NCBI RefSeq assembly: GCF_036365525.1 | Contig: NC_090396.1 | Span: forward strand, 40,846,689 to 40,910,688 | Origin: Heterodontus francisci | Lineage: Eukaryota | Direction of reading: 5' to 3' | Length of the DNA stretch: 64,000 nucleotides | Shown here: piece after piece, positions 191-32,999 of the stretch | How the letters are laid out: each line of letters opens with the position of its first letter | How positions within the stretch are numbered: position 1 is the stretch's first letter | Position numbers and translations under genes: made by a program | Notes under the pieces: generated by a model | Seen by the model: the letters and a program-made list of their open reading frames with translations, nothing else | Told to the model about the DNA's origin: nothing | Database searches by the model: none

Positions 191-514
191 AGCTTGTGAA
201 TTTTGATTGTGAGGATTTAGTGACAGGAATATTTAACGAAGATCCGAAACTACCATGTCCATTCAGTTCAAGCAATATGAATACATTTGAGCTCATTGAA
301 CAGAGTAAATGTGAAAAGGATGGAGAAACATTAATCTTTAATGCAACTGAAAGGGACCAAGAAGCTCAGGGTCGAATTAAATTACTTCATCCACATTCAC
401 AAGATATATCATTGGTAATCCAGAAAACACAACTGTCAGATGTTGGGGAATATAAATATTACCTGGAAACAACTTCTGGTCACATCAGTCAATACATCAC
501 ACTGAAGGTTAAAG
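191..514 (+). CDS. Copy A IgV exon (phase 1-1)
   Basis: Acceptor tgtttttcag|AG. Open frame LVNFDCEDLVTGIFNED..LPC..GRIKL..DISLVIQKTQLSDVGEYKYY..ITLKVK. Donor G|gtggat is weak (copy B has gtgagt). Confidence 0.85.
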
Positions 515-721
515 GTGGATAAAATTATAATTTCCCTGCTTGTTCATCCATGTAGAATATTGGTTGCCTCTAATTTAAAATTTTAAGTTCAATAGTTGCA
601 GCAGTCCCAGAATTAGAAAGGAAGAAAAGGAACCAGGGATCTTACCACTGGTCCCTATCAAATAATCATACTGGAAGGTGGAATGCTAAAAAAGAAAATA
701 AAAAAATCCCTTATGTGTAGT

Positions 722-1130
722 CTAATGTGTCAGCTGTTGTTCAGTTGCTAGCACTCTTGTCTCTAAGTTACAAGGTTCTAGGATCAAGTCCCACTCCACA
801 GCTTGAGCACAAAAATCAAGGCTGACAGGAGCTGTTTTCTGGACAAAATTTGAAACTGAGGCCCCATCTGCCAGTTTAGGTGGATGTAAAAGATCCCATG
901 GCAATATTTTAAAGAGCAGCAGTGGAGATATCCCTGGTGTCTGGAACCAATATATCTTCCTCAATCAACATCACAAAAATAGATTATTTGGTCATTATGA
1001 CATTGCTGTTTGCGGGAGTTGTGTTTCCTATAATGATAACTAAACTTTAAAATACTTCATTGGCTGTAAAATGCTTTGAAATGTCCGGTGGTCCTGTAAG
1101 GTGCTACATAAATGCAAAGTTTTTTTCTAT
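722..1130 (+). mobile_element. Deu-domain tRNA SINE (SacSINE1/AmnSINE-like); counterpart at ~25340-25730 in copy B
   Basis: tRNA-like head (caagtcccactcca), Deu core ggtggatgtaaaagatcccatggca, tail ggtgctacataaatgcaag. Confidence 0.7.
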
Positions 1131-1530
1131 TAATTAGCAGCAAATTCCAGTTTTATTCTCATCCTTAAAGAGCTTGACATGTGAGACAGGTAAACAACAA
1201 GTTATAACGAAGGCCACATTTAGAGAGAAAAGAAAGAATGATTGTGCATTTATATAGCCCCTTTCACATTCTCAGAGCCTTCCAAAACATATTACATAGA
1301 ATGCTTTGAGTTGCAGCCACTGTTGTTGTGTAATCAATCTCAACAACCAACTTGCATGGAGAGAAGTTCCACGAATGACAAAGCGAATGATCAGTTCATC
1401 TGTTCTTGGTGGAGTTGGCTGCACAAAAGATGTTGTCCAGGACACCAAGAGAACACTTTATTTTAATTCTTCCATGGGATGTGGGCATCACTGGCAGGGC
1501 CAGCATTTGTCGCCCATCTCTAGTTGCCCT

Positions 1531-2405
1531 TGACAATTGAGTGACATGCTAGGCCATTGCAGACAGCAGCTAAGAGTCAACCACATTTCTGTGGGTATGG
1601 AGTCACATGTAGGTCAAACCTGGTTAAAACAGCAGATTTCCTTCCCTAAAATACCTTAGGGAACCAAATGGGCTTCTATGGCAATTAATGATACCTTCAT
1701 AGTACCATGATTGAGACTAGTTTTCAATTCTAGATTTTTACTAATTATTTGACTTTAAACTCCATCAACTGCTCTTATGGGATTTGAAACTATGCTCCTA
1801 GCTTATTCATGTGCATCAATAGTTTAGTGATATTACCACTACACCACCATCATCTTTGAATAATATATTGGGATCTTTTCTATCCACCTTAGCAGCATGT
1901 GTAGGCTCAATTTAAAGTCTCATCTCAAAGACAACATTTTCAACAGTGCCTGCTGTGACAACTGAGTGACTTGCTGGGCCATTGCAGACAGCAGCTAAGA
2001 GTCAACCACATTTCTGTGGGTATGGAGTCACATGTAGGCCAAACCACGTAAGGACAGAAAAAAGTCACATGCAGGCCAAATCAGGTAAAGACAGCAGATT
2101 TCCTTCTCTAAAGGGCATTAGTGAGCCTGATAGGTTTTTATGACACCTCCAAAGCACCATTATTGAGTCTAGCTTTCAGTTCCAGATTTTCACTAATTAA
2201 GTAAATTGAAATTCTAGCAGCCGCTATGTTAGGATGTTAACCCATGCCCCCACATCATTAGGCTGCATTATTAGTTTAGTGATACTACCACCACACCACC
2301 ACCTATGAATAGTATGTCAAGATGTTTTCTATCCACCTGAGCAGGTATATGGAGGTCTCAATTTAAAGTCTCATCTCAAAGACAACATTTTCTACAGTGC
2401 CTGCT
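1531..2405. repeat. Tandem duplication of a ~430-450 bp repeat-derived intron segment (units 1531-1955 and 1956-2405)
   Basis: Both units start tgacaa(t/c)tgagtgac..ggccattgcagacagcagctaagagtcaacc and end ctcaaagacaacatttt..acagtgcctgct. Copy B has a single unit (~26134-26578). Confidence 0.85.
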
Positions 2406-3029
2406 CCCTCAGTACTGCACTGAAGTACCAGGCAGCATGATGTTCTCATGCACACTGTGGAATTTGAACCCACAGCCTTCTGACTCTGAAGTGAGATTGG
2501 TCCCAACTGAGTCAAGCTAATACTTTTTATTTATTTTCAATCAGCAGCAGCATAAAATGTGATAACTTTCCTTTCAATAACATGATTTTCTAATGCTGCT
2601 AAACAGTGCTGTGCAGAGGGATTACTATCGCATATATTTTAATGTATTTCTGTTACTCTGTACATTGCAGTTTAAGAAATCAATTTTTTATTCCTATTTT
2701 TAATATTGTTAAAACAGTGCAATTGTGTTAGTTAACATGGTGTGAGGCTGTCCCCATTAAATTACAGCAGTGTTCGAGATTAATAATTTTTTTTCCAATT
2801 GAAGCATTTAAAAATCAAGTCAAAATGGCAAATTGGTACCATTAAGTATTTTCCTCTATCTCATTCCTAACCTAAGGTAACCTAAGTGTAATTAATTTAA
2901 TATCATATATCTGGAAGTTATTGTTTCCCAAGAACTGTTGTTGCTTTTTGCTGTGTGGGAAGGAAGTGTAAAAACTGCCTCTACAGCTCTTTTTCATGAC
3001 ATCAATAACAATGCAATCATTCTTTTTAG

Positions 3030-3207
3030 CTCCACACAGTTGACAAAAGTGACCAATTACACAAATACCACGCTAATGAGAATAACAAATCTCACTTGTG
3101 AAACGACTAGATACTGACAGGTTCAGTTTCACTGGTTTGTCAATGGGAACCTCACATCTGAGTCTCATAATAGTACTGTAGAAACCCCACAGGGATTGCT
3201 CAATATC
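3030..3207 (+). pseudogene. Truncated IgC pseudo-exon, most similar to the copy B IgC exon
   Basis: Acceptor ctttttag|ct. A 1-nt deletion gives TGA at the fifth codon, and CCA>TGA occurs in the GYP motif. Homology ends after gggattgctcaatatca. Confidence 0.85.
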
Positions 3208-3542
3208 ATCACAACATGCTCGATGTATGTACAAGCTACTTTCTAAATTAAACAAAAATGATAAAAGAAAGGTGTTCTAAAATCTGAAGCTCTGAATAGT
3301 TTCAAATTCAGTTATTCAACTCAAAATGACATTGGTACCATTTCAAGCTTTCCTGTATCATAGCCCTAAACGAAGATAACCTAAATTCCACCAGACGAAT
3401 GCAATAAATCTGGGAATTTTTGTTTACCAAGTAATGCTGTTATTTCTTGCTGGTGAGGGAGCAGGGAGTGTAAAAGCTGCTCCTATATTATTCTATGCCT
3501 CTCCCTCATTACCTTAATAACAATGCAATCATTTTCTTTTAG

Positions 3543-3839
3543 CTCCATACAGTTTGCCAAAGGTGACTTTATTCCCAAATCTCACAACCACAATGAGAAC
3601 GACAAACCTCACTTATGAAACGATTGGATACCCACTGGCTCAGATTCATTGGTTTATCGATGGAAAAAGGAACCTCACATCCAAGGCTAAAACTAATAGT
3701 ATAGAAACCCCACAAGGACTGTTCAATATCACCAGCACACTTCAAATCAAAGAAGGAATAATTGCCTTGGAAGGCATTTGTACATGTGCCGTGTGGAATG
3801 TGGAAGACCAGGTGTACGAGGTGCAAAAACACTTTCCAA
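3543..3839 (+). CDS. Copy A IgC exon (phase 1-1, 297 nt)
   Basis: ttttag|CT..CCA A|gtaagt. Translation APYSLPKVT..NLTYETIGYPLAQIHW..TPQGLFNITSTL..GICTCAVWN. Confidence 0.85.
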
Positions 3840-4104
3840 GTAAGTTCATAGCATTTTTTTAAATCTCAGAAAATGATTTTGTTTTTGTTTTCAAAATGTA
3901 GAAAATGCTGTAAGACTGCATTTAATACCCACAACTCTTTGCCCTGAGAAGGCTGTGGGCTTTTTTAAACTATGCATTCCTTTTGTTTCGGTTAAATGTC
4001 AGCATATTTATTGCTAATTAATAGAAGAGTACATATAAATGATTATTATACAGAGGTTGATGGCAGAATTTACAATTAATTAAGTTTTCTTCTCCCACCC
4101 CCAC

Positions 4105-4262
4105 GTTTTGGATCATTTACCTAAGTGTGATCACCAAAGAGAAGAGAAGAGAAGAGAAAGAAAGAAAAACAGTTTTCACAACGGTCGGTGTGATTGCTGG
4201 AGTATTTGTATTTGTAGCAGCAATCTTGGTGGCTTTGTAATATAGTAGTAAAAGGATTCCAG
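4105..4262 (+). pseudogene. Copy A degenerate transmembrane exon
   Basis: Aligns with copy B 27823-27967. The ttttcagattcag acceptor is missing, a GAAGA-repeat expansion adds 13 nt, and TAA at 4238-4240 follows VGVIAGVFVFVAAILVAL. The donor CCA G|gtatga is retained. Confidence 0.8.
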
Positions 4263-5619
4263 GTATGATGGCTGTGTAAATGTTTCCGGTTCTTTTTAAA
4301 GCTTTTGATTATTCCATCAATTATGACATAATCCTCTGTTTTAAAATATTTTTGGTTAGCTTTGGCTTTGAATACAGCCCATAATCTGGAAATCTGATAA
4401 TTCACTTTAACCATATCATATGCCAATCATACAAGTTCCAAGGCTTAAAAAAATGAAATTTAATCTGCAACACTCTGGCTTCAAATTCCTTCTGTCTTTC
4501 TAATTCAAAGGCAACATCGAGCAGAGGTTCACATTTCAGTTAGTGATAGCCACAATTTAAAATGAGTGAATGTCATGAGCCAAGTGGCAGTTTGATATCT
4601 AATTCTATCACCAGGTTTGTGGGAGACACCCATCTCTCTATTGCCAATGCCCATCGATTCTGGCACCCTGCCGATCTCCAACCCTCCCCCACTGCAGCAG
4701 TGCAGAGAACCACTGCAGGTTCTCTGCCTCTTCCTGGAGTTGTGTGCTCTGTTCTCCTGCAAGGAGAGAAAGCAGAGTTATCATTGTGAGAAAAGGAAGG
4801 TATGCAGAGGAGGGAAGGACAACATTTGTGAAGGGTGACTGTGAGGGATGGATATGAGATGGCACTGAGCAGGTTGGCTTCATTGAAATTCTACCCATGG
4901 TGTTTGGTATAGCGAAAGGCACATGAGTGAGGGGCAGGAAGGAAACATTCTTTGTCGGAACTGAAACTTTAAACCAAATTCATTATCTAGTTGTGGACAC
5001 CACTGGCAAAGCTGGCATTTATTGCCAATTTGAGTTGCCCGAAAAAGTGCTGATGGGCCTTCTCCATTGTAGTTTGATACAATAGAATGACTTGGTAGGC
5101 TAATTCAGAGGCCAGTTCAGAGTGAATCACTTTGGTGTGGACTGGAATCACAGAAAGACCAGTACTGACTAAAGGACGGCTGCTTTCCTTCCCTAAAGGA
5201 CATTAGTGGAGCAGTTGGGCTTTTAAAACAATGGTCTAAAATAGATCAAAGCATCGTGGTACCAGCTTTCTTTTTTAACTGAATTCAAATTCTTGCACTG
5301 TGATGGTTGGATTTTAATTCATGTCTTCTGAATACTAGTCCAGACTTTCGGATTAGGAATTCAGTAAGATAACCACTATAGTATCGTACCCTCCTAGTCA
5401 GGTAAGAGGACTACAATCTTCTATACAGGTTGGACAATTATTTTGGATCCCTTTGGTTATAAAAGCATTACTACAGTTGGACAAAGGAATAGGAGAAATT
5501 ATTTGAATGTTAATTAGGGAAAATGTAAGCATTGCTTATAACTGTCAATATTATCACAATTGTACGGAGATTACTGCCCTACTTACACATGATTAGGAGT
5601 TTTTTTGAACTGTAAGCAA

Positions 5620-6045
5620 TAGTGTGTTAGCTGTGGTTCATGATTCTGGACTCAAGTCCCACCCCAGGGCTTGAACACAAAAATCAAGCGGACACTCCAG
5701 TGCAGTACTGAGGGAGTGCTGCACTGTCAGAAGTGCTGTCTTTCAGATGAAATGTTAAACCGAGGCTCGGGTGGATGTAAAAGAACTCACGGCACTGTTT
5801 CAAAGAAGTGGGGGTTATCCCTGTTGTCCTGGTCAATATTTATATCTCAATGAACATTACAAAACAGATTATCTGATCGTTATCACATTGCTGTTTGTGG
5901 GAGTTTGCTGTGTGTATACTGGCTGCCACATTTCCTGCATTACAACAGTGACTACACTTCAAAAGTACTTAATTGGCTGTAAAGTGCTTTGAGACATCTG
6001 GTGGTCGTGAAAAGCGCTATATAAATGCAACTATTTCTTTGTTTC
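5620..6045 (+). mobile_element. Deu-domain SINE present only in copy A
   Basis: tcaagtcccac..cagtactgagggagtgctgcactgtc..ggtggatgtaaaagaac..gctatataaatgcaa. Absent at the matching position of copy B (~29810). Confidence 0.75.
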
Positions 6046-6142
6046 TAATGAACTGAAAATTTTCAGAGCCAAAAATCTTAACTCAAATCAAATTTCATGT
6101 ACCAGAAATAATGAATTTAATCTTTTGTTGCTTCTATTTCAG

Positions 6143-6171
6143 CAGTTCGGAGAGAATCCGAAATCCGAATG
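6143..6171 (+). CDS. Copy A cytoplasmic exon 1 (AVRRESEIRM)
   Basis: ttcag|CA..ATG|gtaggt, homologous to 29911-29939. Confidence 0.7.
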
Positions 6172-6252
6172 GTAGGTGTAGTTTCAAACATTAGCTTATT
6201 TTTGAAGGCCTTGTGCCACTGTTTTCATAATTTTGTTTTTTTCTTTTAACAG

Positions 6253-6282
6253 ATAACAAGTGACCAGAAGGCTGATGTTTAA
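6253..6282 (+). CDS. Copy A terminal coding exon (ITSDQKADV*)
   Basis: ttttaacag|ATA..GTT TAA, homologous to 30020-30049. Confidence 0.7.
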   Translation: MTSDQKADV

Positions 6283-6821
6283 TCGCGATTGCAGTGAATA
6301 ATTTCTATTTCTGCTTGTGAAGTATGCACTGACATCCGATGTTATGGTCTACTTTCATTTTGTGACATGACAGCTCAACCATGTCATTTAGTATCATCTG
6401 ACTAAAGAAAGGTGGTTTTACAACACACATTATTTCAAGCACTGTCACTTTTCTCTTCAGTGAATACCTGGAAACTGCAACTATTTTTAATGCAGTTACT
6501 GTCCAGGATAATACTTCTGATTGATCTACAGCACCGTGCTAAACTCTTCACCATTTGTTTTTCTGTAAAGAAAAAATGCCACATATTTGTTGCCTACTAG
6601 CATCATTGCTGAAACACTGGGTCCACAACAGAAGACAACCACAACTAGAGAGCTGGGTTCTCAATCCTGAAAGGTGTCATTCAAGGGGTATCACTGTTTT
6701 ACAACTGGAACAGTAAATGGATCAGTGTGCGACATCACAACACTCTGTAAAAGGAGAAGAAAATCTTAGACTTAGTTGTACTTTGAAAATATACTTCCTG
6801 TTGGTTGATTACAGAAATATT

Positions 6822-8575
6822 AGAGTCATAGAGTTATACAACACAGAAACAGGCCCTTCGGCCCATCATGTCTGTGCCGGCCATACAGTACCCAACTATT
6901 CTAATCCCATATTCCTGCACTTGGCCCATAGTCTTGTATGCTATGGCATTTCAAGTGCTAATCTAAATACTTCTTAAATGTTGTGAGGGTTCCTGCCTCC
7001 ATCACCTCTTCAGACAGTGTGTTCCAGATTCCAACCGCCTGCTGGGTGAAAAAGTTTTTCCTCAAATCCCCTCTAAACCTCCTACCCCTTACCTTAAATC
7101 TATGCCCCCTGGTTCTTGACCCCTCCGCTAAGGGAAAAACTTTCTTCCTATCTAACCTATCAATGCCCCTCAGAATCTTGTACACCTCAATCATGTCCCC
7201 CCTCAGCCTTCTCTGCTCTAAAGAAAACAACCCTAGCCATTTCAGTCTCTCTTCATAGCTGAAATGCTCCAGCCCAGGCGACATCCTGGTGAATCTCCTC
7301 TGCACCCTCCCCAGTGCAATCACATCCTTCCTATAGTGTAGTGACCAGAACTGTACACAATACTCCAGCTGTGGCCTAACTAGCATTTTATACAGCTCCA
7401 TCATAACCTTCCTGCTTTTATATTCTATGCCTCAGCTAATAAAGGCAAGTATCCCATATGCTTTCCTAACCATCTTATCTACCTGTGCTGCTGCCTTCAG
7501 TGATCTATGGACAAGTACACCAAGGTCCCTCTGACCTTCTGTACTTCCTAGGGTCCTACCATCCATTGTTTGATTAGATATACAGCACTGAAACAGGCCC
7601 TTCGGCCCACCGAGTCTGTGCCGAACATCAACCACCCATTTTTTATACTATTCCTACGCTAATCCCATATTCCCAACAAACCTGTTCCTATATTTCCCTA
7701 CCACCTACCTATACTAGTGACAATTTATAATGGCCAATTTACCTATCAACCTGCAAGTCTTTTGGCTTGTGGGAGGAAACCGGAGCACCCGGAGAAAACC
7801 CACGCAGACACAGGGAGAACTTGCAAACTCCACACAGGCAGTACCCGGAATCGAACCCGGGTCCCTGGAGCTGTGAGGCTGCGGTGCTAACCACTGCGCC
7901 ACTGTGCCGCCTTGCCTTGCCTTATTAGTCCTCCCAAAATGCATTAACTCACACTTCTCAGCATTAAATTCCATTTGCCACTGCTCCGCCCATCTTACCA
8001 GCCCATCTATATCTCCCTGTAATCTAAGGATTTCCTCCTCACTATTTACAACACTACCAATTTTCATGTCATCTGCGAACTTACTGATCATATCTCCTAT
8101 ATTCACGTCTAAATCATTAATGTACACTACAACCAGCAAGGGTCCCAGTACCGATCCCTGTTGTACACCACTGGTCACAGGCTTCCAATCGCAAAAACAG
8201 CCCTTGACCATTATCCTCTGCCTCCTGCCATGAAGCTAATTTTGGATCCAATTTGCCAAATTGCCCTGGATTCCATGGGCTCTTACCTTCTTAACAAATC
8301 TCCCATGCGGGGCCTTATCAAAAGCCTTACTGAAGTCCATATAGACTACATCTACTGTTTTACCCTCATCTACACATCTAGTCACCTCCTTGAAAAATTC
8401 AATCAAGTTAGTTAGACATGATCTGCCAATGACAAAGCCATGCTGACTATCCCTGATTAATCCCTGCCTCTCCAAGTGGAGATTAATCCTGTCCCTCAGA
8501 ATTTTTTCCAATATTTTCCCAACCACTGATGTTAGACTCACCAGCCTTTAACTACCTGGTTTATCCCTGCTACTG
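6822..8575 (-). mobile_element. 5'-truncated CR1 LINE inserted in the copy A 3' UTR
   Basis: ORF2 fragments: QHGFVIGRSCLTNLIEFF, GVQQGSVLGP, KFADDMK, LVRPQLEYCVQFWS. The ctctatgactct-type tail is at the left end. Confidence 0.92.
7571..7911 (-). mobile_element. tRNA-derived V-SINE (HE1-like) nested in CR1
   Basis: Reverse complement reads ggcggcacagtggcgcagtggttagc..ggttcgattcc (A and B boxes), V-domain gtggagtttgcaagttctccc, then a CR1-like 3' tail. Confidence 0.88.
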
Positions 8576-8799
8576 TCCTATAGAAGAAGGATAGGGATGA
8601 TTCAACAGCAGAGTGTTCACCTCCTTTGGCTGGAAGGGCAGGGCTGTTGGGACTGTTGGTTTCTCTTAAGGTCTAAGGTAATATAATTTAGTGAGTCTTC
8701 ACCGTGACTTGGTGGATAAAGATATTGTCAGTGTGGTACTAAATGACACAGACCAGGAGGTTCAATTCCTGGTTGGTTCTGAATTAGCCAATCTCACCT

Positions 8800-9228
8800 C
8801 TGATTCAGAAGGTCATAGGCTCAAGCTCCACTCCAGGTACTTGAGTATAGAATCCAGGCTGACACTTCCAGCATCCCACGAAAGGAGTGCTACACAGTTG
8901 GAGCTGCCATCTTTTGGATGAGATGCCAAAACTAAGGCCATATCTGTCCTCTCAGGTGGATGCAAAAACCCTGTGGCACTATCTGAAGGAGAACTGGGAG
9001 TTTTTCCCAGTGCCCTGGCCAATATTTATCCCTCAATCAATATCACAAAAACAGAGTATCCGGTCACTATCACGTTGCTGTTCGTGGGAGCCTGCTGCAC
9101 GTAAACTGGCCCCTACGTTTCCTACAATTGTGATTACACCTCAAAAGTATTTAATTGGCTGTAAAGTACTTGGAATTGTCCTGAGGTTGTGAAAGGTGCT
9201 ATATAAATGCAAGTCCTTTCTCCTTTCT
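8800..9228 (+). mobile_element. Deu-domain SINE
   Basis: tcaagctccactccag..ctcaggtggatgcaaaaaccctgtggcact..ggtgctatataaatgcaag. Confidence 0.7.
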
Positions 9229-9586
9229 TTAGCTGATCTCAGTTGAGGAAGCAATTAGAGTGCAACAATTGGTCTCATTCTCCCAAGCTAGGGAGAAGAA
9301 TGAAAAAAATGAGCCAAGGTTCTTGCTCTTGATCGGTATCTGGTGTATGTGTGTATGTGTGAGGGGGACAGAACTGGGCCACTGCATCAGCATAAAGGGC
9401 CTAGTGACACTCACTTCTGAAGAATGGCCACAGGGGTGAGCTACCCAGAGAGCTACTGGTGCCCACAGAATTGTACCCCAGCTTGAATCAGTATTTTCAG
9501 GAAAGGAAAATGGAACAACACACTCAACTGAATCACTGCTCTGTGATCACTTAAAAGAGGACAAATTTCCTTTGGGGAAGGAACAC

Positions 9587-10340
9587 ACAGAAGTGGAAAA
9601 GGCCATAGCACTCCTCATCCACTCCCTGTGGGAAGCAAACCACCACCATGGGTATCCCAATTGTTCAGGATTCAGAGATCTGGACAACTTCCACCAGTCA
9701 GGGGGTTAAATTAGTTGATACTCAAGAGGGAGGCAAACTCAAATCATTCATTGAGCAGAATCTTGGATTTCAACAGAAGGTCACTGGTTGATCAGTGGGC
9801 AACTATGTCACATGAAATAAGGTTTGTGGTTCAATCCTTGTTCTGTGCTGAGGTGGCGGGGTGGCAGTGGGTGGAGGGTTGGTGTTAGGATTGACTCCGG
9901 TATCGGTTAAGTTTCCCATTGCTGTCCAATAGCACTGCTGAATGGGTGTTTCCGGCTTTGTTGCGATGCCCACCACAGTTGACCAGCTATAATGTATAGA
10001 CTAAACATAAAGAGGACTGGTTGGGTGAGTGACAGAAAGCTCCCATTGCCTGTACCTCAAGTATGGTCTTCATGAAAGGCCGGGGTAAGGAGATAAAGTA
10101 TTTAATACAAATTTAATCTGTTTTTTTTTCTCTGTTTAGCTCTCCCCATGCTGCCCAACATTGTTGAGGAGTCTCCAATGCAAAGCCACCTTCCCTAAAG
10201 GGTTTCTACTCCCTCCCTGAGGACAGGTTCCTGGTCTCCATTCAGCCTTCCCTGCAGATGCCATGACCCAGTTCAGGAATGTACTGTGGTGAGATTGGAG
10301 GATTAAACTCACAGGACAAGCACAGCCATTATCTAACCAC
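9587..10340 (+). pseudogene. Possible decayed S100-like gene fragment (two exon remnants)
   Basis: TEVEKAIALLI, then after a 63-nt insert DNFHQ, then after a frameshift DTQEGGKLKSFIEQNLGFQQK|gt. A strong acceptor ends at 10139 and is followed by LLRSL and, in another frame, YCGEIGGL. By-eye similarity only. Confidence 0.3.
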
Positions 10341-13106
10341 AAGAGTGAAAATTATTTCTTTCTTTTCCTTCAAAAATGTTGAAAGTTACAGTGCGGTAAA
10401 GGCCCATTCAGACCTGGAAGGTTCCAGGTTCAAATTGCAGTATGTGCTGAGTGAGGTGACCTCAGCTCTTTAATTGGCCTCATGCCCCTTGGCTCATGAA
10501 AGGGGAGGAGAAAATTGAGATTCCTGACCATTATCCAATACTTGAAAGGGCACATTGTGAACAGCAGTCAACTACAGACTCAGGCTCGGCTGTGATGCCA
10601 ATCCATGGTTGAATAGCCGGCCAACACTTACTCTCTGGACTCACATATGAATAATGGCTATTAAGGCAAGTGATTAAAGGGTGATTTGGGCCTGCAGAAC
10701 TGTATCCAAGACAAAGATCAGTGCCTTCAGAGGACAGGAGGAAACACAAGGGGAGGGTATGAAAAGGTTTGTGTGTTGGACTGTATTTCTCACTCAGTAA
10801 AAGAGGAAATGCAGTTGAAGGCAACCACATTGGAAAATTGTGCAAATTTATAATTATATTTACACATTAGTAATGACTGTAAATCACTTTAATGTAAATC
10901 AAGTTGATCTATTTTGTCTTCCAACATGTTGCTTTACTACTTTGTTCTAAATCACAGTTGAAGAAATTTGAAACAAATAAATTACTGTTTTATTGTAAAA
11001 TCTGATTTGCCTGAGGTGCTGGGTTTCATATTTTGTTGAATAACATATTTGAATACATTTTTAAAAACTTTTTTAGACTTTATTCTTGTTTTGTATAAAT
11101 AGACAATGGACAAAGATGTTGTACCTTATAAAGTTTAATAAAACATTTATTTGTTTCAACTGCTTTGTTCATTTTTACTAAAATTCTGGACTATTTTTCA
11201 TGCAATAAATGCATGTCTTCTTCCGCTAAATGCTGTGTAAAAATATCGAGACATAGCTTATCAAAGAGTTTGCAAAATAACAGAGTCTCTGATTTAAGTT
11301 AAAGCTCCACTTAAGGCATGGAGGAGTCTGAGGCCAGTTTTAGTCTTAATATAAACAAACTCTGATGGTCCCGTAACTGTCTCATAATGAGCTAGAATTC
11401 AGTTGTAGTCTATTGAAAGCTTATGCTGTTCTCATGGTGTCCTTAAGCCCAAGGAGTGTTGTAAGCAATGATCTTTAATTGTGAGATTGTTTAACACACT
11501 CCTTGGGCTGAATTTTACTGGCCCTCGGCTCCGCGGGTCATAGCGCAGGGACCGGTAAAATACTGCGGGGAGAGGCCTGCCTCGACCTACGATGTCAAGA
11601 AGGGTCCGTCGCAAATTACCGGCGGGGGGGTACCTTGGTGCAGCACCCCCCCGGACCGCCGCACAGCGGCAGCACCATAATTACAATATGTTAAACGGTA
11701 CTTACCTCTGCAGATTACGCAGCCCGCCTCTCCATTGACACTTTCTGATTTTTCGCTGAATGGGCGGCCATTCACGTGTCGTCCCGTTCACGATTTGAGA
11801 AGCCGACAAGTCCACAGAGTCAGGAGGTTTCGCGGCAGCAGGTAAGTTCCTTTTCAGGGGTCCCACTCTGCATTCTTAAAGGGTTCAACTTTATTTATCA
11901 CATGGAAATAGGTATGGCTCATCCTACATTGTCTGATCCTCTGCTCGTGAGGATCCGTATGTGGCAGAGGCAATATCAACAGGCAGGTGCAATCTATGTA
12001 GAGGCTCCCGGTCGGCAGCTGCAGCCCCCAAAGGGAGCTCACCATTAGGATTGCCGTGCATCTACAGACCCCACATGACATGCCATCGTATCTCAGAGCA
12101 CTAGTGTCAGAAGTGATTATGTATGTAGAGAGGGTGGTGACATGTTTCTGTGCCCTGTTCAAGGATGACCTGCAGCCCATGGGCTCTGGTGGACATCCCA
12201 TGCCTTTGTTCCTCATAGTGGCAGCAATTCTCAAGTCTGACGCCTCTGCAGCTTTTTAGAGGCCCACCAGAGACCTTTGTGGGGTCACACAGTCAGCAGT
12301 GCACCTCTGCATCAGGGAGGTCACCAATGCTCTGCACTGGAGGCCCAGTGAGGATGTCCGCTTCAGGATGGACTCTCACAGCCAGGCCCAGAAGGTCATT
12401 GGTTCTGGCACCATTGCCGGAGAAACATAGGTTGTAATGTTCATAGACTGCACTCATTTGGCCATCAGGCCTACTGCCAGGCTACCACCTGCAGACGTCA
12501 CCATTAAAGGTGTCCTCTCAATCCAGGTGAAGCTGGTATGTGAACACCACGGATGCTTGCTGCAAATGTGTGACCGCTTCTCAGGCAGCTGCCATGACAC
12601 CTGGGTCTTGCGCCTGTACCGCTGCCACCGCTGTTCACTGAACTAGCTCAGATGGAGGGGTGGCATCTTGGAGATAAGGGTTATCCTTTGCAGACATGAC
12701 TCCCGACACCGGTGAGTGACCCCAACACTGCTGCAAAGGAGAGATACAATGCCAGCCACCAAGCTACATGAGCCACAATTGAGCAGGTGATCGGCATGCT
12801 GAAAGAGCACCTCCACTGCCTGTATGGATAGGGTGATGCCCTGTACTACAGGCCGAAAAGGCCAGCTCCTTTCCTTGCTGCTCTGCACAACTACACACCC
12901 AATAGGGGCCAGGCCTGGCATGATGAGGAGAGACGTCAACAGGATTTCTGCTCAGATTATGAGGATGCTGAGGACCTACAACATGAAAGATGCATGGGAG
13001 AGCAGATAGCACTCAGGCTCTGCACGCAGGGCTAGTATAGCAGTGGCTCATCAGACAAAGACTGTCTGCTCCATAGGAAGCGACATGAGCTCTGCAAACC
13101 ACGCAT

Positions 13107-13452
13107 TAAAGGCCTGCTCAGGTCCGCAAAAAAACCCCGACCTGAGCCCGACAGAACAGCATCCGACCCGACCCGAGTCTTCCATTTTTTCCCGCGCCCA
13201 ACCCGACCATCGGTTAACTCATCTTCCATTTTTCACTTTGTTGCTGATCTGCACAAGCTTAAAATAACTGTAACAAAACCACCTTTCTAGTCCAAAAATT
13301 AAAGTAACAGTGGAGCCACTTGCCTGAGATAGAGCATATCCAACCCGGCCTGACCCGAGCTCGAATACCAGACCCAGAAATGCAACCCAACCTGACCCGA
13401 ACCCGACACGTCATTGGGTCCCGTCGGGTTCGGGTCGGGTAGCAGGCCTTTA
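13107..13452. mobile_element. hAT-type MITE nested in the Harbinger element
   Basis: TIR taaaggcctgct / agcaggccttta, 8-bp TSD ccacgcat / ccacacat, and many subterminal acccga / tcgggt repeats. Confidence 0.85.
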
Positions 13453-13892: not shown

Positions 13893-14031
13893 TGAAAAGT
13901 GCTGGGGTAACTCAGCAGGACAGACAGCATCTGTAGAAAGAGAAGCAGAGTTAGCTTTCAGGTCTGTGAATTTGGACAGGTTGCTGCCACAGATGCTGCC
14001 TGACCTGCTGGATTTCTACAGCACTTTCTGC
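13893..14031. repeat. Short foldback element related to Penelope-like terminal sequence
   Basis: gaaaagtgctgg..ctcagcagg..cagcatctgt faces acagatgctgcctgacctgctgg..cagcactttc. The same motif occurs at 62430-62480. Confidence 0.6.
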
Positions 14032-23195: not shown

Positions 23196-24810
23196 GTGGG
23201 ATCATTTCTTACAGACTTAGTCCGAATGATGGAGCCCTCCATCGTTAGCACCGTGCATCACCCGGATTATAGATGTCCCAGTTGTAAAATTCTAAACTCA
23301 GGCAGCTGGTGGAACTACTTGGAAACATTCAAAGTTTGTTGTTGAAAACAGAGATAAACTAGAAAAGTATTGGGATATTTAAACCTGACTTTTCCGATTG
23401 CTCATTGTGTTTATCCTGTAAATAGCTAAGCTGTAGAGGGACCAGGAAGGTCTGGGATTTCAACTCTGCTTGTGGAGGCTGGAATTGCCCTGACAGTTCA
23501 CTTGTGATGCACTCTGTGGTGGAATAACTCGCCAACACTCACTCCTGGAACCAGGGTTTCAACTGATCTTCCACTAAGATGGAAGATCGGGGAAACTCCA
23601 TGGAAATTCTGCCCCTTTATATCAGGACTTGCACAACAGGTGCTAGACATGTGGGTGAAGTATCAGAATCTAACTCATGCCAATAACTAAAGAAGAGGTG
23701 GGCAGGTGAATTAATGGAAGTGGGACAAGGGAGCAGGCAGTTAACCCTCTTCCTGGGGTGGGTTATCTATTTAACTATCTAACCCCTTCCAATATACAAA
23801 CTGGGTGGTTTTATTTTAATAAAAAAAAGTCAACAGATGAAACTCTCCGCCGAACAAAGGCGGTGGAGGGGTGCTACCACCCGGTAAACGGGACCTGGAC
23901 CAAGCAGAGATCAGCAGCCGCCAGCCTCTCAATCCGGTGCCGGGGAGGAGGGCATGATTCCATCCCCACATCCCCAACTGACACCCCAGGATCAGGGATC
24001 GGGTCTCCCTCCAAGGTCTGGGATAGGGAGCCCCCTTGGTGCTAGTAGCAGCTGCAGCCTTGTCTGGAATGTGCCCCTCCCGAATAGAAGCCAAGCCTGC
24101 CAAACATGTTGAACTTCAGGCAGGGAGCCTTGCTAATAAAAAGACGCACGCTGTGGATTCAAAATTACACAGCATGTGGGGAAATCCGAAAGCCTTGTCC
24201 ACCACTGTCTGCAGAACCTGCTGCTGTCAAGATCAGAGCCACGGACTTATTGCAGTGTCTTATGTGTATACTGTTTTCAGTTTTGGCTTTCTTGCTTTGA
24301 GAATTGTAAGAAAACACTGCAAAATGCACTTGTAAGGTTAACAGAAACACATAAAATAATTGTGATCATTCAAAAATTTCTAGCAAATATATCTGATGGA
24401 ACTTTTAGTTCAGTGAAATACAGTTCTTTGACATTCCTGACAAAACCTAACTTATGATGCAAAAGAAAGTGAAATTGTCGGGGCCATGATCAGATCAACC
24501 ATGATCTTATTGAAGCTGGAACAGGTTCGAGGGGCCGAATGGCATACTCCTGCACCTATTACTTATGTTCTTAAATCAGGTTTGATTTGATCTCTTAGAT
24601 TTAATGATTTTTCTGTATTGTCCCCCAATAAGCAGGTGAACTGAATTCTGGAAATGGGTTCATACCACACAATAAGTCTCCTTTATGTCATCTTCTATGC
24701 AAGCACACTCAATGCACAAAGTAAGTACTGAAATGCATCTCGATAGAAAGCTCATTCAACAGCAATTGTCACTGAAGTAACATGAGCTAATGAAAATTAT
24801 TGTTTTTCAG

Positions 24811-25134
24811 AGCTTGTGAATTTTGATTGTGAGGATTTAGTGACAGGAATATTTAACGAAGATACGAAACTACAATGTACATTTAATGCAAGCAATGTGA
24901 ATACATTTGAGCTCATTGAATTGAGTAAATGTGAAAAGGATGGAGAAACATTAATCTTTAATGCAACTGAAAGGGACCAAGAAGCTCAGGGTCGAATTAA
25001 ATTACTTCATCCACATTCACAAGATATATCATTGGTAATCCAGAAAACACAACTGTCAGATGGTGGGGAATATCAATATTACCTGGAAACAACTTCTGGT
25101 CACAGCAATCAATACATCACACTGAAGGTTAAAG
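24811..25134 (+). CDS. Copy B IgV exon
   Basis: tgtttttcag|AG..AAA G|gtgagt; V-set pattern LQC..GRIKL..DISLVI..SDGGEYQY. Confidence 0.88.
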
Positions 25135-28100
25135 GTGAGTAAAATTATAATTTCCCTGTTTATTCTTCCATGTAGAATATTGGTTGCCTCTAATTTAACA
25201 TTTTAAGTTCAATAGTCGCAGCAGTCCCAGAATTAGAAAGGAAGAAAAGGAACCAGGGATCTTACCTCTGGTCCCTATCAAATAATCATACTGTAAGGTG
25301 GAATGCTAAAAAAAAATTTTTAAATCCCTTAAGTGCAGTCTAATGTGTCAGCTGTGGTTCAGTTGCTAGCACTCTTGTCTCGAAGTCGCAAAGTTCTCAG
25401 ATCAAGTCCCACTCCACAGCTTGAACACAGGTGCTGTCTTCTAGACAAGATGTTAAACTGAGACCCCATCTGCCAGTTTAGGTGGATGTAAAAGATCCCA
25501 TGGCAATATTTTAAAGAGGATCAGCTGAGATATCCCTGGTGTCTGGAACCAATATATCTTCCTCAATCAACATCACAAAAACAGATTATTTGGTCATTAT
25601 GACATTGCTGTTTGTGGGAGTTGTGTTTCCTATAACAGTGACTACACTTCAAAAGTACTTCATTGGCTGTAAAGCACTTTGATATGTCCAGTGGTCATGT
25701 AAGGTGCTATATAAATACAAGTTTTTTTCTTTTAATTAACAGCAAATTCCAGTTTTATTCTCATTCTTAAAAGAGTTTGACATGTGAGATAGGCAAACAA
25801 GAAGTTATAATGACAGTCATGTTCAAGGAGAAAAGAAAGAATGATTGTGCATTTATATAGCCCCTTTCATATCCTCAGAGCCTCCCAAAACATATTACAT
25901 AGATTGCTTTGAGTTGCAGCCACTGTTGTTGTGTAATCAATCTCAACAACCAACTTGCATGGAGAGAAGTTTCACTGATGACAAAATGGATGATCAGTTC
26001 ATCTGTTCTTGGCGGAGTTGGCTGCACAACAGATGTTGTCCAGGACACCAAGAGAACACTTTATTTTAATTCTTCCATGGGATGTGGGCATCATTGGCAA
26101 GGCCAGCATTTGTTGCCCATCTCTAGTTGCCCGTGACAATTGAGTGACTTGCTAGGCCATTGCAGACAGCAGCTAAGAGTCAACCACATTTCTGTGGGTA
26201 TGGAGTCACATGTAGGTCAAACCACGTAAGGACAGGAAAAAGTCACATGCAGGTCAAATCAGGTAAAGACAGATGATTTCCTTCTCTAAAGGGCATTAGT
26301 GAGCCTGATGGGTTTTTATGACACCTCCAAAGCACCATTATTGAGTCTAGCTTTCAGTTCCAGATTTTTATTAATTAATTAAATTGAAATTCTAGCAGCT
26401 GCTATGCTATGAACCCATGCCCCCACATCATTAGGCTGCATTATTAGTTTAGTGATACTACCACCACACCACCACCTTTGAATAGTATGTCAAGATGTTT
26501 TTTATCCACCTTAGCAGGTATAAGGAGGTCTCAATTTAAAGTCTCATCTCAAAGACAACATTTTCAACAGTGCCTGCTCCCTCAGTACTGCACTGAAGTA
26601 CCAGGCAGCATGATGTTCTCATGCACACTGTGGAATTTGAACCCACAGCCTTCTGACTCTGAAGTGAGATTGGTCCCAACTGAGTCAAGCTAATACTTTT
26701 TATTTATTTTCAATCAGCAGCAGCATAAAATGTGATAACTTTCCTTTCAATAACATGATTTTCTAATGCTGCTAAACAGTGCTGTGCAGAGGGATTACTA
26801 TCGCATATATTTTAATGTATTTCTGTTACTCTGTACATTGCAGTTTAAGAAATCAATTTCTTGTTCCTATTTTTAATATTGTTAAAACAGTGCAATTGTG
26901 TTAGTTAACATGGTGTGACGCTGTCCCCATTAAATTACAGCAGTGTTCGGGATTAATAATTTTTTTTCCAATTGAAGCATTTAAAAATCAAGTCAAAATG
27001 GCAAATTGGTACCATTAAGTATTTTCCTCTATCGCATTCCTAACCTAAGGTAACCTAAGTGTAATTAATTTAATATCATATATCTGGAAGTTATTGTTTC
27101 CCAAGAACTGTTCTTGCTTTTTGCTGTGTGGGAAGGAAGTGTAAATACTGCTCCTACATTATTCTACAGCTCTTTCTCATTACATCAATAACAATGCAAC
27201 CATCCTTTATAGCTCCATACAGTTTACCAAAAGTGACCAAATACACAAAATCCACACCAATGAGAATAACAAGACTCACTTGTGAAACGACTGGATACCC
27301 ACAGGCTCAGTTTCACTGGTTTGTCAATGGGAACCTCACATCTGAGTCTCATAATAGTACTGTCGAAACCCCACAGGGATTGCTCAAGATCACCAGCACA
27401 CTTCAAATCAAAGAAGGAGCAAGCACCTTGGAAGGTAATTACACTTGTGCTGTGTGGAATGTGGAAGACCGTGTATACGAGGTGACGAATAATCTTTCAA
27501 GTAAGTTCATAGCATTTATTCTTCATATTAAACTCAGCAAATAGCTGTTTAAAGAATTGATATTTTTTGAATTTGTTCTGAAAATGTGGACAGTGCTGCA
27601 AGGCTGTATGTAATACCCATGTCTATTTAGCCTGAGAAGGTTGTGGACCTTCTTTTTAACTTATTGCAGTCCTTTTCCTTACAGTGCTCTTTAAAATTAA
27701 CTTAGCTATTGCTATTTAATGTAGTCATGGAAGGGTAGGAATAAATGACATTATTATGCATTTGGAGGCTGATGCTGGAATTAACAATTAATTAAATTGT
27801 ATTCCCCAAATTTTCAGATTCAGTCTTGGGTCATTTTTTGAATCGTGATCACAAAAGTGAAGAGAAAAATGAAATCGTTCTCATAGTCGTCCTTGTGATT
27901 ACTGGAGCAATTTTACTTGTAATAGCAAGCTTGGTGATGTTTAAATTCAGGAGAACCAGGCTTCCAGGTATGATGGTTGTGGAAATGTTTTTGTTTCCTT
28001 TTAAAACTTTTGATTATTACATGAATTATGACATAATCTTATGTTTTAAAATCCTATTGCGTAACCTTGATTTTGAATATGCCCATAATCTGGTAACCAA

Positions 28101-30049
28101 TTCAGTTTAACCTTATCATATGCTAACTGTACAAGTTCCAAGGCTTAATAAAAAGAAGTAACAGAATCTCAAACATTCTGAATGGTTTCAAATTCCATCT
28201 GTCATTCTAATTCATATGAACATAGAATTAGGATCAGGAGTAGGCCATTCGGCCCCTTCGAGCCTGCTCCGCCATTTATAGCTGATCTGATTGTGGCCTC
28301 AACTCCACTTTTTTGTCTACCCCTGAAAACCTTTGACTCCCTTGTTAGTCCAGAATTTATCAACCTCTGCCTTAAAAATATTTAATGACCCTGTTTCCAT
28401 CGCTCTCTGGGGAAGAGAGTTCCAAAAACTCATAACCGTTGAGAGAAAAAATTTCTCCTCATTTCTGTCTTAAATGGATGACCCCTTATTTTTAAATGGT
28501 GTCCCCTAGTAGTTGTCTCTCCCACAAGAGGAAACATCCTTCAGCATCCACCCCGTCAAGTCCCCCCAGGATCTTATATGTTTCAATAAGATCACCTCTC
28601 ATTCTTCTAAACTCCAATGAAGACAAACCCAACCTGTCTAACCTTTCTTCATAAGATAACCATCTGCAACCACCCCCCCCACCCCCCTCAACTCCCAGGC
28701 ATCAATCAGTGAATCATTCACTTCCTAGAGTTGTGTGACTTACATAAGCTCTTGGCTGAATCGCTGAAAGTCAAATACATTTATATTACTAATCAGGAAA
28801 ACATTTGCTGAACAGTTTGTTCAAATGAAATCAAGAGGGATCTAAAGCTATGAATGTTGCCTAATTAGTTGCAATCATTAGATTTCCTTATGCAGTAATT
28901 GGATGAAGAAGTTGGGTAAAGAGGGGTGGATAAAGTACCAATACAAGCCATGCCGCCACCCCTCCTCCACTCCCACCAAGAGAAGGAACAAAAGCTCATA
29001 TGTGTCACACTGAACTGCTCTGGAGCACCTTCTATTTAGCCATACCCAGCCATCAAGCAGCACTGGTGGAGATATGCAAATAAGTCATCTGTGGTGTTCC
29101 AATCCACAAGTTTGGTACAGGGAAAGGTAAATGGAGGAGGGGAGAAAGGAAACATTCTTAAGTAGGAACTGAGATGTTGTAAAAATACATTATCTAGTTG
29201 TGTGCACTGCTGGCAAAGCTGGCATTTATTGTCCATCCTGAATAGCCCTGAGCTGAAGTTGTGGGGCCTTCTCCATTGTAGTTTAATACAACTGAGCGGC
29301 TTGCTAGGCTAATTTAGAGGGCAATTCGGTGTCAACCACATTGGTGTGTGACTTGTGGACTGTAGCTTTCCTTCCAGAAAGGACTTTAGTGAACCAATTG
29401 GGCTTTTCTGACAATGGCCTAAAGGTCACTGACACTTCATGGCCAGCTTTACTGATACCTGTCTTCTTTAAAAATCTGAACTCAAATTCTCCCAAAAGGT
29501 AAGGGTGGGATTTGAACTCATATCTTCCAAATACTAGTACAGAGTTCTGCATTAGTAATTAGGTAACATAACCACTACAATATCATACCCTCTAGTCAAG
29601 TAAGAGGACTGAAATTTTATGTAAAGGATGGGCTTATTTTGGATCCCTTTTGGTTATAAAATAATTTTTATAGTTGGATAAAGGAGTAAGAGAAATTATT
29701 TTAATATTCGTCAAGGAAAATGTGTGCATTGTTTATAACTGTCAATATTATCTCAATTGCACAAAGATTACTGTCTTTTTTACACATGATTAGGAGTTTT
29801 GGAACAATGAGAAATAACATACTACAAACTTTCACAACTGGATATGTTATTTCAAAGCAAATTTTATGCACCAGAATTAATTAATAAAATTTTTTTTGCT
29901 TTTATTTTAGCAGATAGAAGACAATTCGAAATTCCAATGGTAGGTATAATTTCAAACATTAGCTTATTTTTTAAAGGCTTTGTGTCATTGTTCTCATAAT
30001 TAGTTTTTTCTTTTAACAGATGCCAAGTGACCAGCAGGCTGATGTTTAA
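24811..30049 (+). CDS. B7-family PD-L1/PD-L2-like type I membrane protein, copy B (join 24811-25134, 27213-27500, 27818-27967, 29911-29939, 30020-30049)
   Basis: All junctions are GT-AG and phase-compatible, giving an uninterrupted IgV-IgC-stalk-TM-tail frame ending QQADV*. IgC motifs LTCETTGYPQAQFHW, TPQGLLKITSTL, NYTCAVWN. Confidence 0.8.
27213..27500 (+). CDS. Copy B IgC exon
   Basis: tttatag|CT..TCA A|gtaagt; both Cys and the Trp are present. Confidence 0.9.
27818..27967 (+). CDS. Copy B stalk and transmembrane exon
   Basis: ttttcag|AT..CCA G|gtatga; IVLIVVLVITGAILLVIASLVMF followed by the basic KFRRTR. Confidence 0.88.
28200..28715 (-). mobile_element. CR1 3' fragment, copy B-specific
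   Basis: gagtaggccattcggcccc..agatcacctctcattcttctaaactccaatga. Confidence 0.8.
29911..29939 (+). CDS. Copy B cytoplasmic exon 1 (ADRRQFEIPM)
   Basis: ttttag|CA..ATG|gtaggt, conserved with copy A. Confidence 0.75.
30020..30049 (+). CDS. Copy B terminal coding exon (MPSDQQADV*)
   Basis: ttttaacag|ATG..TAA, conserved with copy A. Confidence 0.75.
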   Translation: MPSDQQADV

Positions 30050-31024
30050 TAGCGATTGCAGTGAATAATTCTTATTTCTGCTTGGGAAACATGCACTGAT
30101 ATCAATGTCATGAACTATTTCAAGAACATTTTGTGAAATGATGCTTCAAATATACAGTCCAGCTGTGTCCTTTCGTGTTATGTGAATAAGAAACTTGCAC
30201 CACATAGATTATTTCAAGCACTGTCACTTTCCTGTCCAGTGAATACCTGTAAATTGCAACTATTTTTAGTTACAGCCCAGGATAATACTTCTGATTGACC
30301 AATCTCACTGTGCTAAACTCTTCACTTTTGTTTTTCTATAAAGAAACAATGCCACTTATTGCTTGTCTACTAGCACCATTGGTAAAACACTGTAAACCAT
30401 AAAACAGATGGTTACCACAAACCAGAGAGCTTATCCCTCAATCCTGGCTGGTGCCATTCAAGGAGTATCATTGTTTTACAGTTAGGATAGTAAATGGATC
30501 AGTGTGCAACATCACAACACTCTGTAAAAGGAAAAGAAAATCTTAGGTCCAGTTGCACTTGGAAAATATACTTCCTGCTGGACGATTACAGGAATATTGT
30601 GAAAAGGTTTGTGTGCTAGCCTGTATTTCTCACTCAGTAAAGGAGGAAATGTGGTTGCAGGCGGTTACATTGGAAAACTAATGTAGAGAGAGGATCTCCT
30701 GTATTCTCAAAGTTGTGTAAACTGATAATTATATATATACATTAGTAAGGACTGTAAATCACTTTACTGTAAATCAAATTGATCTATTTTGTCCTCCAAC
30801 ATATTAGTTTACTACCTTGTTCTATACCACATTTGTAGCCCTTTGATTCAAGCAAATAAATGTACAATTTTATTGTAAAATCTAATCTGACTGAAATGCT
30901 GAGTTTCACATTTTGCTCATTAACATATGTAAATAATTTTTAAAAAGCATCAATGTTTTTTTTTACTTTATCTTCATTTTGTATTAACAGAAAATGTACA
31001 AAAGTATTGCCCTTTGTAAAGTTT

Positions 31025-31097
31025 AATAAATACAGTTCTCTTCTTTCATCTGCTTTGTTCATTTGTGAAAATTCTGGACTATTTTTCATTCAATAAA
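31025..31097 (+). terminator. Candidate poly(A) signals of copy B
   Basis: AATAAA at 31025 and 31092, both conserved in copy A (~11137, ~11204), about 1 kb after the stop codon. Confidence 0.5.
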
Positions 31098-32999
31098 TGT
31101 ATCTGTCCCATTACAGTAAATGCTGTGTAAAAATATCCAAACAAACCTGATCACAAAAAGCTTTCCAAAATAACAGAGCCACTGATTGAATTTAAAGCTC
31201 CGCTTAAATCATGGAGGAGTCTGAGCCCAGTTTGGGTTTTAATATAAGCTAGCTTTGATGGTTGCATACAGTCTTATAATGAGCTACAATGAATCAATTG
31301 CAGTCTACTGGATGCTGATACTTTTCTCACGGTGTCCTTATGCCAAATGAGTGCTGTAAGTAACAGCCCTTAACTAGGAGATTGCGTAACACACTCCTCC
31401 TTGCCCCTATTACAGGCCGGTCTGGTGCTGGATATGAGCAAATTAGGAGCATTCATACACTTACAGGGTAAGATGAGCTAACAACCCAACATTTGCCATC
31501 ATTGGTGATATCCACATGTTCTCGAGCAGATTAATTATTCAGATCTTGTCAAATAAATACTCTGTTCTAGTCCATGCAAATTTTACACCCTGCCTGTGGA
31601 AAATGTTAGTTTCGAAGCTCAATATCTTAGTACAGACATTGAATTTCATACACAACGTCACTTTTATGTTGATAATCACTTTCCTTTTGACATATTCCAC
31701 TCTTCCCACTTGAGAAGGCACTGAATGTTTGCTGTGTTATTGTTCCAAGGGTAACCATCCATTTCTGATAACATGCCAACATGCTCTATTGCTCATGTGC
31801 CAACCTTTACTGTGAATGTGAGCAGGTTTTTTAACGTTGGGAGCTTTCAATTATTTGTGTGGGATAAAAAGGAGCAGGAGTGTTCTTCCAGGCCAGAAAA
31901 GAATAATCTAGGCTGCTGCTGCCCTGGGTTTCACTCTCTTTCCCCAACCTCACTCCCCTCCCATTGTTTGTCAACCCTCCAGGTCTTACATTTGTTGCTG
32001 GCTGAGCCAATGATATTGCACTGCTCCAAATCCAGCGAGGTACAATCCCCTTCATGTTACTTCTATTTTTCAATGAGGCCTGGGGCCTCAAAATATACCC
32101 ATTCTCTTCACGGCCAGAACACATTGCCATCTGGCTTGTTTCCCCGGTCGATGACTCAATAGTTCAAATCTAGCCATTCTACATTGATAAAAGCAGTCCT
32201 GACCAATTCTCACCACAATAGTGAAGGATGCTGAGGTCAATTGTGGTCTGCCTGCATCTACTCCAACTGAGATCAACTAACTGAGCACAAACGTTCTCCC
32301 TCATGTCCACCCTGTCCTGTCAAAGCTCATCTCAATTGAAATTGACCTACTGCTCCGTTCCTTAACTCCATTCCCACTAAACTCTTGGCCATCCTATCTG
32401 CCTTCTTGTCCCCGTTTTGGTTCACAGTGTAAATATTTATCGTTTCAGCAATCACATCCTCAACCACTGCCAGCACTCAGTTTCTCAAAATACTCTAACT
32501 GATCTGCTCACTTCTCAGTAATTGTCTCCCAATTCCAATCTACCTATTCTCTCTAGGGTGTTTGAACACATTGTTACTTCCCAACTCGGTGGATGTCATT
32601 CCTGCAACTCCCTGTTTGAATCACTCCAGCCCTCCCACAGCACCAAAATAGCTTTAACCAGTCACAAACGGCCTTCTCTGTGAATGTAACAGTGGTACAT
32701 TATCCCTTCTGTCATACCTGCAGCCTTCTATACCAAACCACACGCCTCCAACACCTCCCCCCTCTGGTTCTGCTGTGTGGGACCGAGCTGACTTGTTTCA
32801 ACTCAGCTTCTAATTCCAATTATGGGACTGAGGTCACCCTAAAGCAATACAGAGTAAGACATCCTGGAGTATAAAAAGTACCAAATGTTAATTTTTCTCC
32901 AACCAAAAATGCACAGATTATCTTCAGTTGAATTAAAATTGTCTTTTATCTTGTATACTGATAGATTTCATTCCAGCTAATAACTTGGCTGAATTGGAC

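Follow-up and report, generated by a model that had tools for sequence, protein, structure and literature searches.

A 64,000-nucleotide (nt) stretch of the genome of the horn shark Heterodontus francisci (contig NC_090396.1, positions 40,846,689 to 40,910,688 of the forward strand), which we refer to as the window, carries two tandem genes that we call copy A and copy B. We find it probable that they are two members of a B7-type family that is common to sharks and rays, has close relatives in the coelacanth and is separate from canonical PD-L1, with copy B a working gene and copy A a decaying one. The family has the B7-type architecture of one V-set and one C-type immunoglobulin (Ig) domain (IgV and IgC), a transmembrane (TM) segment and a short tail, as seen with Pfam, AlphaFold2 (AF2) and Foldseek. 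An earlier note on this DNA had proposed shark B7-family genes with a V-C-TM layout, and both the domains and the match to RefSeq proteins of Heterodontus francisci confirm this.

Copy B is intact, transcribed and correctly spliced. The RNA evidence comes from four runs of one sample, whose contigs behave as RNA and skip introns exactly at GT-AG sites. On the forward strand, a 2020-nt contig of run X3 joins the leader exon (24630-24720), the IgV exon (24811-25134), the IgC exon (27213-27500), the exon for the stalk, the TM segment and the start of the tail (27818-27967), 30 letters that could not be placed, and the sequence from 30020 onward; contigs of runs X2 and X4 back the same joints. The leader exon holds the ATG at 24654, a signal peptide and a phase-1 donor, and its true 5′ edge is perhaps 24633 or 24636, as the acceptor is ambiguous. 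The IgV exon is identical to the RefSeq protein P0160 and encodes a V-set domain with a cysteine on the A strand and with neither the F-strand cysteine nor the tryptophan. The IgC exon contains CETTGYP and CAVWN, and the TM exon is reflected in a helix at residues 227-273 of the AF2 model. The 30 unplaced letters correspond to two trimmed bases of the TM exon and a 29-nt exon ending in G, for which a candidate scan yielded a single good candidate, the cytoplasmic mini-exon at 29911-29939, bounded by AG and GT and distinguished by the best polypyrimidine tract and by a donor that reads GTAGGT; P0160 reads DRRQFEIPM here. The last exon (30020-30620) comprises nine codons, the TAA at 30047-30049 and a 3′ untranslated region (UTR) that extends past 30620.

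Copy B thus has one domain per exon, with all junctions from the leader to the TM exon in phase 1, and its coding segments (67+324+288+150+29+27 nt) give 295 amino acids (aa) from the ATG to the TAA. RefSeq holds it as "programmed cell death 1 ligand 2-like isoform X2" (P0160, 294 aa), an isoform that results from a NAGNAG alternative acceptor at 29914. About 169 more contig letters lie 5′ of 24630, as either a separate upstream exon or collinear sequence; if a 5′ UTR exon upstream, which was not located, is counted, copy B is a seven-exon gene. CD274 has the same layout of seven exons. The 273 uninterrupted codons that the earlier note had reported for copy B match the count from the V exon onward, the motifs that it had singled out (CETTGYP, TPQGLLKITSTL, CAVWN and ITLKVK/APY) are all found, and its predicted large junctions are joined by the spliced contigs, with the 29-nt exon fitting by length.

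The product of copy B is a type I membrane protein consisting of a signal peptide, IgV, IgC, stalk, TM segment and a tail of about 30 residues. Pfam detects V-set (7.5e-9) and Ig_3 (7.6e-11) domains in its exons, and the AF2 model, with a predicted local distance difference test (pLDDT) score of 77.9, contains two beta-sandwiches and a TM helix, both domains having blocks of pLDDT 80-94. The tail carries QFE, a motif of the PD-L1 tail, which we take as chance because it is not conserved across the family.

We found that the canonical IgV disulfide between strands B and F and the C-strand tryptophan are absent from the aligned members of the family. Throughout the alignment of shark and ray proteins (17 of 17), the A-strand cysteine C29 and the B-strand cysteine C45 are invariant, Y110-x-Y112 replaces the usual Ig Y-x-C, and L60 stands where Ig domains have tryptophan; the IgC pair C154/C209 and W166 are likewise invariant in this 17-sequence alignment. 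Nearly all family members have the A-strand cysteine and lack both the F-strand cysteine and the tryptophan of the IgV domain. Because these substitutions are invariant in the alignment, the odd IgV is a conserved family-wide trait and not decay. A third IgV cysteine (Cys65, in LSKCEKDG) is present in both horn shark copies (24811-25134 and 191-514) and in no other member; a bond between the cysteines of strands A and B would leave it without a partner.

The IgC exon served as query of an exhaustive HMMER search with cluster look-up, in which the 150 representatives listed were mostly giant multi-Ig proteins, and the family itself was searched with a white shark relative as query and with a 17-sequence profile. 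It includes at least 35 shark and ray proteins, comprising V-C-TM forms of about 290 aa and V-C-C stingray forms of 373-392 aa, and a third horn shark paralogue (RefSeq "PD-L1-like", P0161, 296 aa) lies on the same 77.8-Mb scaffold. A conserved tail, R-R-x-S-E-x-P-M ... D-V/A, runs through the family and suggests a conserved intracellular interaction. V-C-C forms (373-392 aa) were seen in stingrays (P0166, P0167, P0168 and P0171) and in the coelacanth (P0111), under RefSeq names such as hemicentin-like, otk-like or NCAM-like.

Beyond sharks and rays, three coelacanth proteins, whose genes share a single contig, reach 122-129 bits with the family profile, compared with 64-82 bits for frog PD-L units and at most 44 for everything else compared. 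The earlier description of a lineage-specific cluster therefore does not hold at the level of the family. Two of the three coelacanth relatives have the A-strand cysteine without the F-strand cysteine and the tryptophan, and the third has a canonical IgV. These genes (LOC102347274 and its neighbours, named "ICOS ligand" and "PD-L2-like" in RefSeq) resemble the shark and ray proteins in the IgC motifs GYPL-x-QIHWF and CTVWN, but differ from them in reading CKTSRGYP or CQTSRGYP (C-x4-GYP), in the one canonical IgV, in one V-C-C form and in their tails. The frog units, the sole outgroups at hand, are the two fused in P0060. This Pyxicephalus adspersus "PD-L1" of 624 aa joins two complete PD-L units, with V-C-TM-tail present twice, most likely because the gene predictor merged PD-L1 with PD-L2. 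The family was not retrieved from other vertebrates in our limited homologue searches, which returned only family members.

In the family tree, rays form one clade and galeomorph sharks two lineages. The tree joins the two horn shark copies as sisters (support 99), with no firm position relative to the two galeomorph lineages. In Mustelus asterias, the V domains of P0010 and P0162 are sisters (support 98), but their C domains fall into different groups, a pattern that suggests gene conversion or exchange at the scale of exons inside these clusters, as for copy A of the horn shark.

Copy A is a duplicate in decay and consists of two layers of different age. RefSeq holds it as "CD276 antigen-like" (XP_067914191, P0009), a protein of 230 aa made from the V exon and the second of two C exons, without a TM segment. 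All its parts lie on the forward strand, and were placed mainly by alignment to copy B. The leader exon (10-100, ATG at 34, also in P0009) and the IgV exon (191-514, donor GTGGAT) are open, the V exon differing from that of copy B at 13 nt, of which 11.5 are nonsynonymous. Self-blastn and tblastn place at 3030-3208 an additional, truncated piece of a C exon with about 95% identity to copy B; it ends mid-exon and contains a 1-nt deletion and an in-frame TGA at 3115-3117. After it come 195 unrelated bases, then an older intron stretch and then the complete C exon (3543-3839), which is used in P0009, is part of the older layer, with 79% of its nt shared with copy B, and has tyrosine in place of the first IgC cysteine. 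A relic of the TM exon (about 4100-4262) reads CAC where copy B has a CAG acceptor and runs into a stop directly after the hydrophobic stretch. The cytoplasmic mini-exon (6143-6171) and the last coding exon (6253-6282, ITSDQKADV followed by a stop) are open.

The same two layers are evident in self-blastn of the window, in which the copy A side (1-15530) is collinear with the copy B side (24621-31835). Positions 1-1620 match 24621-26223 at 92.6% identity and 1955-3208 match 26133-27392 at 95.2%, whereas in all blocks beyond 3208, out to 15530 (equivalent to 31835), the identity drops to about 79%. The simplest history is an old duplication followed by recent 5′ copying. An old tandem duplication would account for the 3′ part of copy A at about 79% nt identity, and a later non-homologous copying event would have inserted the 5′ portion of a gene like copy B (92-95%) into the older paralogue, ending inside the C exon and leaving the spare, broken C-exon fragment behind. 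A C-domain tree hinted at an origin of the full C exon of copy A in another lineage. An approximately unbiased (AU) test does not reject copies A and B as sisters (p 0.52), and we therefore limit our claim to the age difference between the layers. No copy A contig was found on the copy B V exon, given copies 95% alike, a threshold of 90% and one sample, and the depth across this exon equals that of the single copy B contig in every run; this speaks, if weakly, for silence of copy A in the sampled RNA. Of the two collinear genes with V, C, TM and two cytoplasmic exons described in the earlier note, the collinearity and the intact copy B stand, but copy A is damaged.

To place the family among B7 proteins, we compared its profiles with the PDB, where CD276 (B7-H3), PD-L1 and PD-L2 lead the two-domain chains per V-C unit. 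The shark and ray profile (A1) gives 73.5 bits with mouse CD276, 69.5 with the PD-L1 ectodomain, 63 with PD-L2 and 52 with BTN1A1. With the coelacanth sequences added (A2), the scores are 86.2 for CD276, 82.7-83 for PD-L1, 75.8 for PD-L2 and 63 for BTN1A1, followed by CD80 (49.6), ICOSL (46.6) and CD86 (42.4); an eight-Ig DSCAM chain sums higher than the B7 chains with this second profile. For the IgC exon alone, PD-L2 is the best single-domain match (34.9 bits), the best single V-C-unit CD276 chain reaches 30.2 bits, the four-domain human CD276 sums to 44, and PD-L1 is not among the top 60 PDB matches. The IgV exon alone retrieves no PD-L protein, its best match being VSIG4 (E 0.0013). Foldseek returns BTN1A1, PD-L1 (TM score 0.76), PD-L2 (TM score 0.80) and B7-H3 as top matches of the copy B model; PD-L2 and then PD-L1 give the best superposition of the predicted structure, and the E-values of BTN1A1 and B7-H3 are equal. 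The Protein Atlas offers only generic V-C neighbours (BTN2A2, OX-2 and CD80). Butyrophilins (BTN1A1, BTN3A) share the V-C ectodomain and the top Foldseek E-values, but score only 52-63 bits, and the family differs from them in its short tail and the lack of B30.2.

Judged by these scores, the family appears to lie in the PD-L and B7-H3 neighbourhood of the B7s, at about equal similarity to B7-H3 and PD-L1, and the nearest relative is not decidable between them. The PD-L-like assignment made in the earlier note finds some support in the IgC domain, whose best single-domain match is PD-L2, but none in the IgV domain, and with the complete unit PD-L1 scores no higher than CD276; the IgC domain groups robustly with no one family, be it PD-L or another. 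C-x3-GYP, which had been read as a mark of PD-L, is not diagnostic, given the C-x4-GYP spacing of the relatives in the coelacanth.

Canonical PD-L1 is known from catshark, nurse shark and thorny skate, where it has the tryptophan, YRC, C-x3-GYP and CMFW (Kondo et al. 2025, PMC12151841 supplement); XP_038660173 and XP_032874294 are canonical PD-L1 entries of shark and skate. The present family, too, is represented in catshark and thorny skate (P0156, P0169 and P0182). Because canonical PD-L1 coexists with the family in these two species, the family is a paralogue of PD-L1 and not its orthologue. PD-L1 contacts PD-1 through the conserved residues F19 and D122 (PMC12151841); the equivalent of F19 (F24) is nearly invariant in the family, and the equivalent of D122 is serine in copy B and aspartate in P0159, P0161 and P0162.

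In line with the PD-L-like reading of the earlier note, the genes could be extra PD-L genes, derived from a duplicated ancestral PD-L and still binding PD-1, a view that we regard as decidedly unlikely. It would explain why PD-L2 comes first among the single-domain PDB matches of both the IgC exon and the paralogue P0161, why the C-x3-GYP spacing, the CxxWN motif and the VK/APY domain junction are as in PD-L1 and PD-L2, and why a frog PD-L unit is the top-scoring named B7 sequence at hand (82 bits). The IgV-IgC-TM ectodomain, the short tail from two small exons, the seven-exon layout like that of CD274, the modelled superposition (TM 0.76-0.80), the nearly invariant F19 equivalent and the several paralogues with a D122 equivalent fit it as well. 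However, CD276 scores equal or higher with both profiles, the IgV domain finds no PD-L protein when used alone and, unlike that of PD-L1 and PD-L2, lacks the B-F disulfide partner and the tryptophan and carries an A-strand cysteine, copy B has serine and not aspartate at the D122 equivalent, and the coelacanth relatives have C-x4-GYP. In addition, canonical PD-L1 is present alongside the family in catshark and skate, and a second PD-L gene has been found in tetrapods only (PMC12151841).

A family that represents the B7-H3/CD276 of cartilaginous fish and the coelacanth, with a strongly diverged IgV, seems rather unlikely, although CD276 is the top PDB match of both profiles and, together with PD-L2, of the coelacanth P0187. 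The APYS-x-P linker and the GYP-x-A-x-(V/I)-x-W motif are shared with CD276, the V-C-C forms of rays and coelacanth recall the domain duplications of B7-H3, and several members bear the name CD276 in RefSeq. These RefSeq names are automatic and inconsistent, however, identity to human B7-H3 is about 24%, and CD276 scores no better than PD-L1. Furthermore, CD276 has a canonical IgV, which the family has not, and C-x4-GYP against the C-x3-GYP of elasmobranchs, a difference of a one-residue insertion in the alignment by hidden Markov model (HMM). It is extremely improbable that the two copies amount to pseudogenes or annotation noise, with decay behind the IgV oddity: the canonical IgV cysteine and tryptophan are missing and copy A is clearly damaged, but the same substitutions occur in all 17 open-frame shark and ray proteins and in two coelacanth genes, copy B yields transcripts whose splice joints fall exactly at GT-AG sites, and AF2 folds both domains. 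For copy B this explanation is already contradicted. We prefer a separate family with a working copy B and a decaying copy A, against which three points weigh: its position relative to PD-L and CD276 is read from HMM scores alone, it could be the divergent B7-H3 of elasmobranchs, and the absence of copy A RNA was inferred solely from contig depth in one sample.

An IRF-E/ISRE-like motif (interferon regulatory factor element or interferon-stimulated response element; GAAAGTGAAA) is located on the forward strand at 24465-24474, 156 nt upstream of the point where RNA support for copy B begins. The window contains its core GAAANNGAAA 12 times, compared with 4.6 expected, and the strict ISRE pattern GAAANNGAAACT has no match. 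As a putative IRF-E-like element near copy B, GAAAGTGAAA would parallel the regulation of PD-L1.

In the window, tblastn detects no family exons besides those of the two copies, and there is no cellular gene in the flanks that could serve for synteny. Copy A is split by transposon insertions at 6842-10834 and 11503-14331, and an open reverse-transcriptase reading frame of 409 aa (16716-17945, reverse strand; RVT_1, 6e-32) lies between the two copies, with related fragments at 7574-7914 and 53450-53786. The other 32 kb hold only reverse-transcriptase fragments of long interspersed nuclear elements (LINE) and a Harbinger/PIF-type DDE transposase, open over 295 aa (45664-46551, reverse strand; DDE_Tnp_4, 3e-28), beside which lies an open reading frame of 213 aa without a Pfam match (43285-43926, forward strand). 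Intronic repeats at 25421-26420 and 28221-28620 are covered by RNA contigs to depths of 10^4 to 10^5 and have 77% self-similar copies at 1601-1954 and 2063-2405. They are abundant transcribed elements resembling short interspersed nuclear elements (SINE-like), and most spurious joints in the read table are due to them. The gene pair itself is a case of ordinary birth-and-death evolution, in agreement with the cluster proposed earlier, in that duplication and decay have shaped the tandem genes.

If it resembles all B7 ligands characterised so far, the copy B product would be a glycosylated cell-surface protein that shows the front sheet of its IgV to an Ig-superfamily receptor on lymphocytes. 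The IgV would be held by a disulfide between strands A and B instead of the usual one between B and F, and the conserved tail may signal or sort the protein. Candidate receptors are PD-1 and the orphan CD28-family members of cartilaginous fish, which include CD28HL1, CD28HL2 and CD28X (PMC11599192). It is possible, if doubtful, that the family is an ancient B7 lineage, older than the split between cartilaginous and bony fish and retained in elasmobranchs and the coelacanth, with an A-B disulfide in its IgV in place of the universal B-F one, and that it serves as ligand of CD28HL1, CD28HL2 or CD28X, or as a second ligand of PD-1.

The genes are already in RefSeq, where inconsistent automatic names (PD-L1-like, PD-L2-like, CD276, ICOS ligand and hemicentin-like) are spread across the family. 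Full-text literature searches found no paper on the family, though an earlier description is possible. PD-1, PD-L1 and several orphan CD28-family receptors were recently found in sharks (PMC12151841, PMC11599192). The ligand side of shark checkpoints is poorly charted, and here we describe a family that is conserved, expressed and tandemly expanding. To recognise it as a single lineage apart from PD-L1 would correct contradictory annotations and would supply a concrete candidate ligand for the orphan receptors. The rewired IgV of the family offers a natural test of the extent to which the B7 fold tolerates the loss of its core disulfide.

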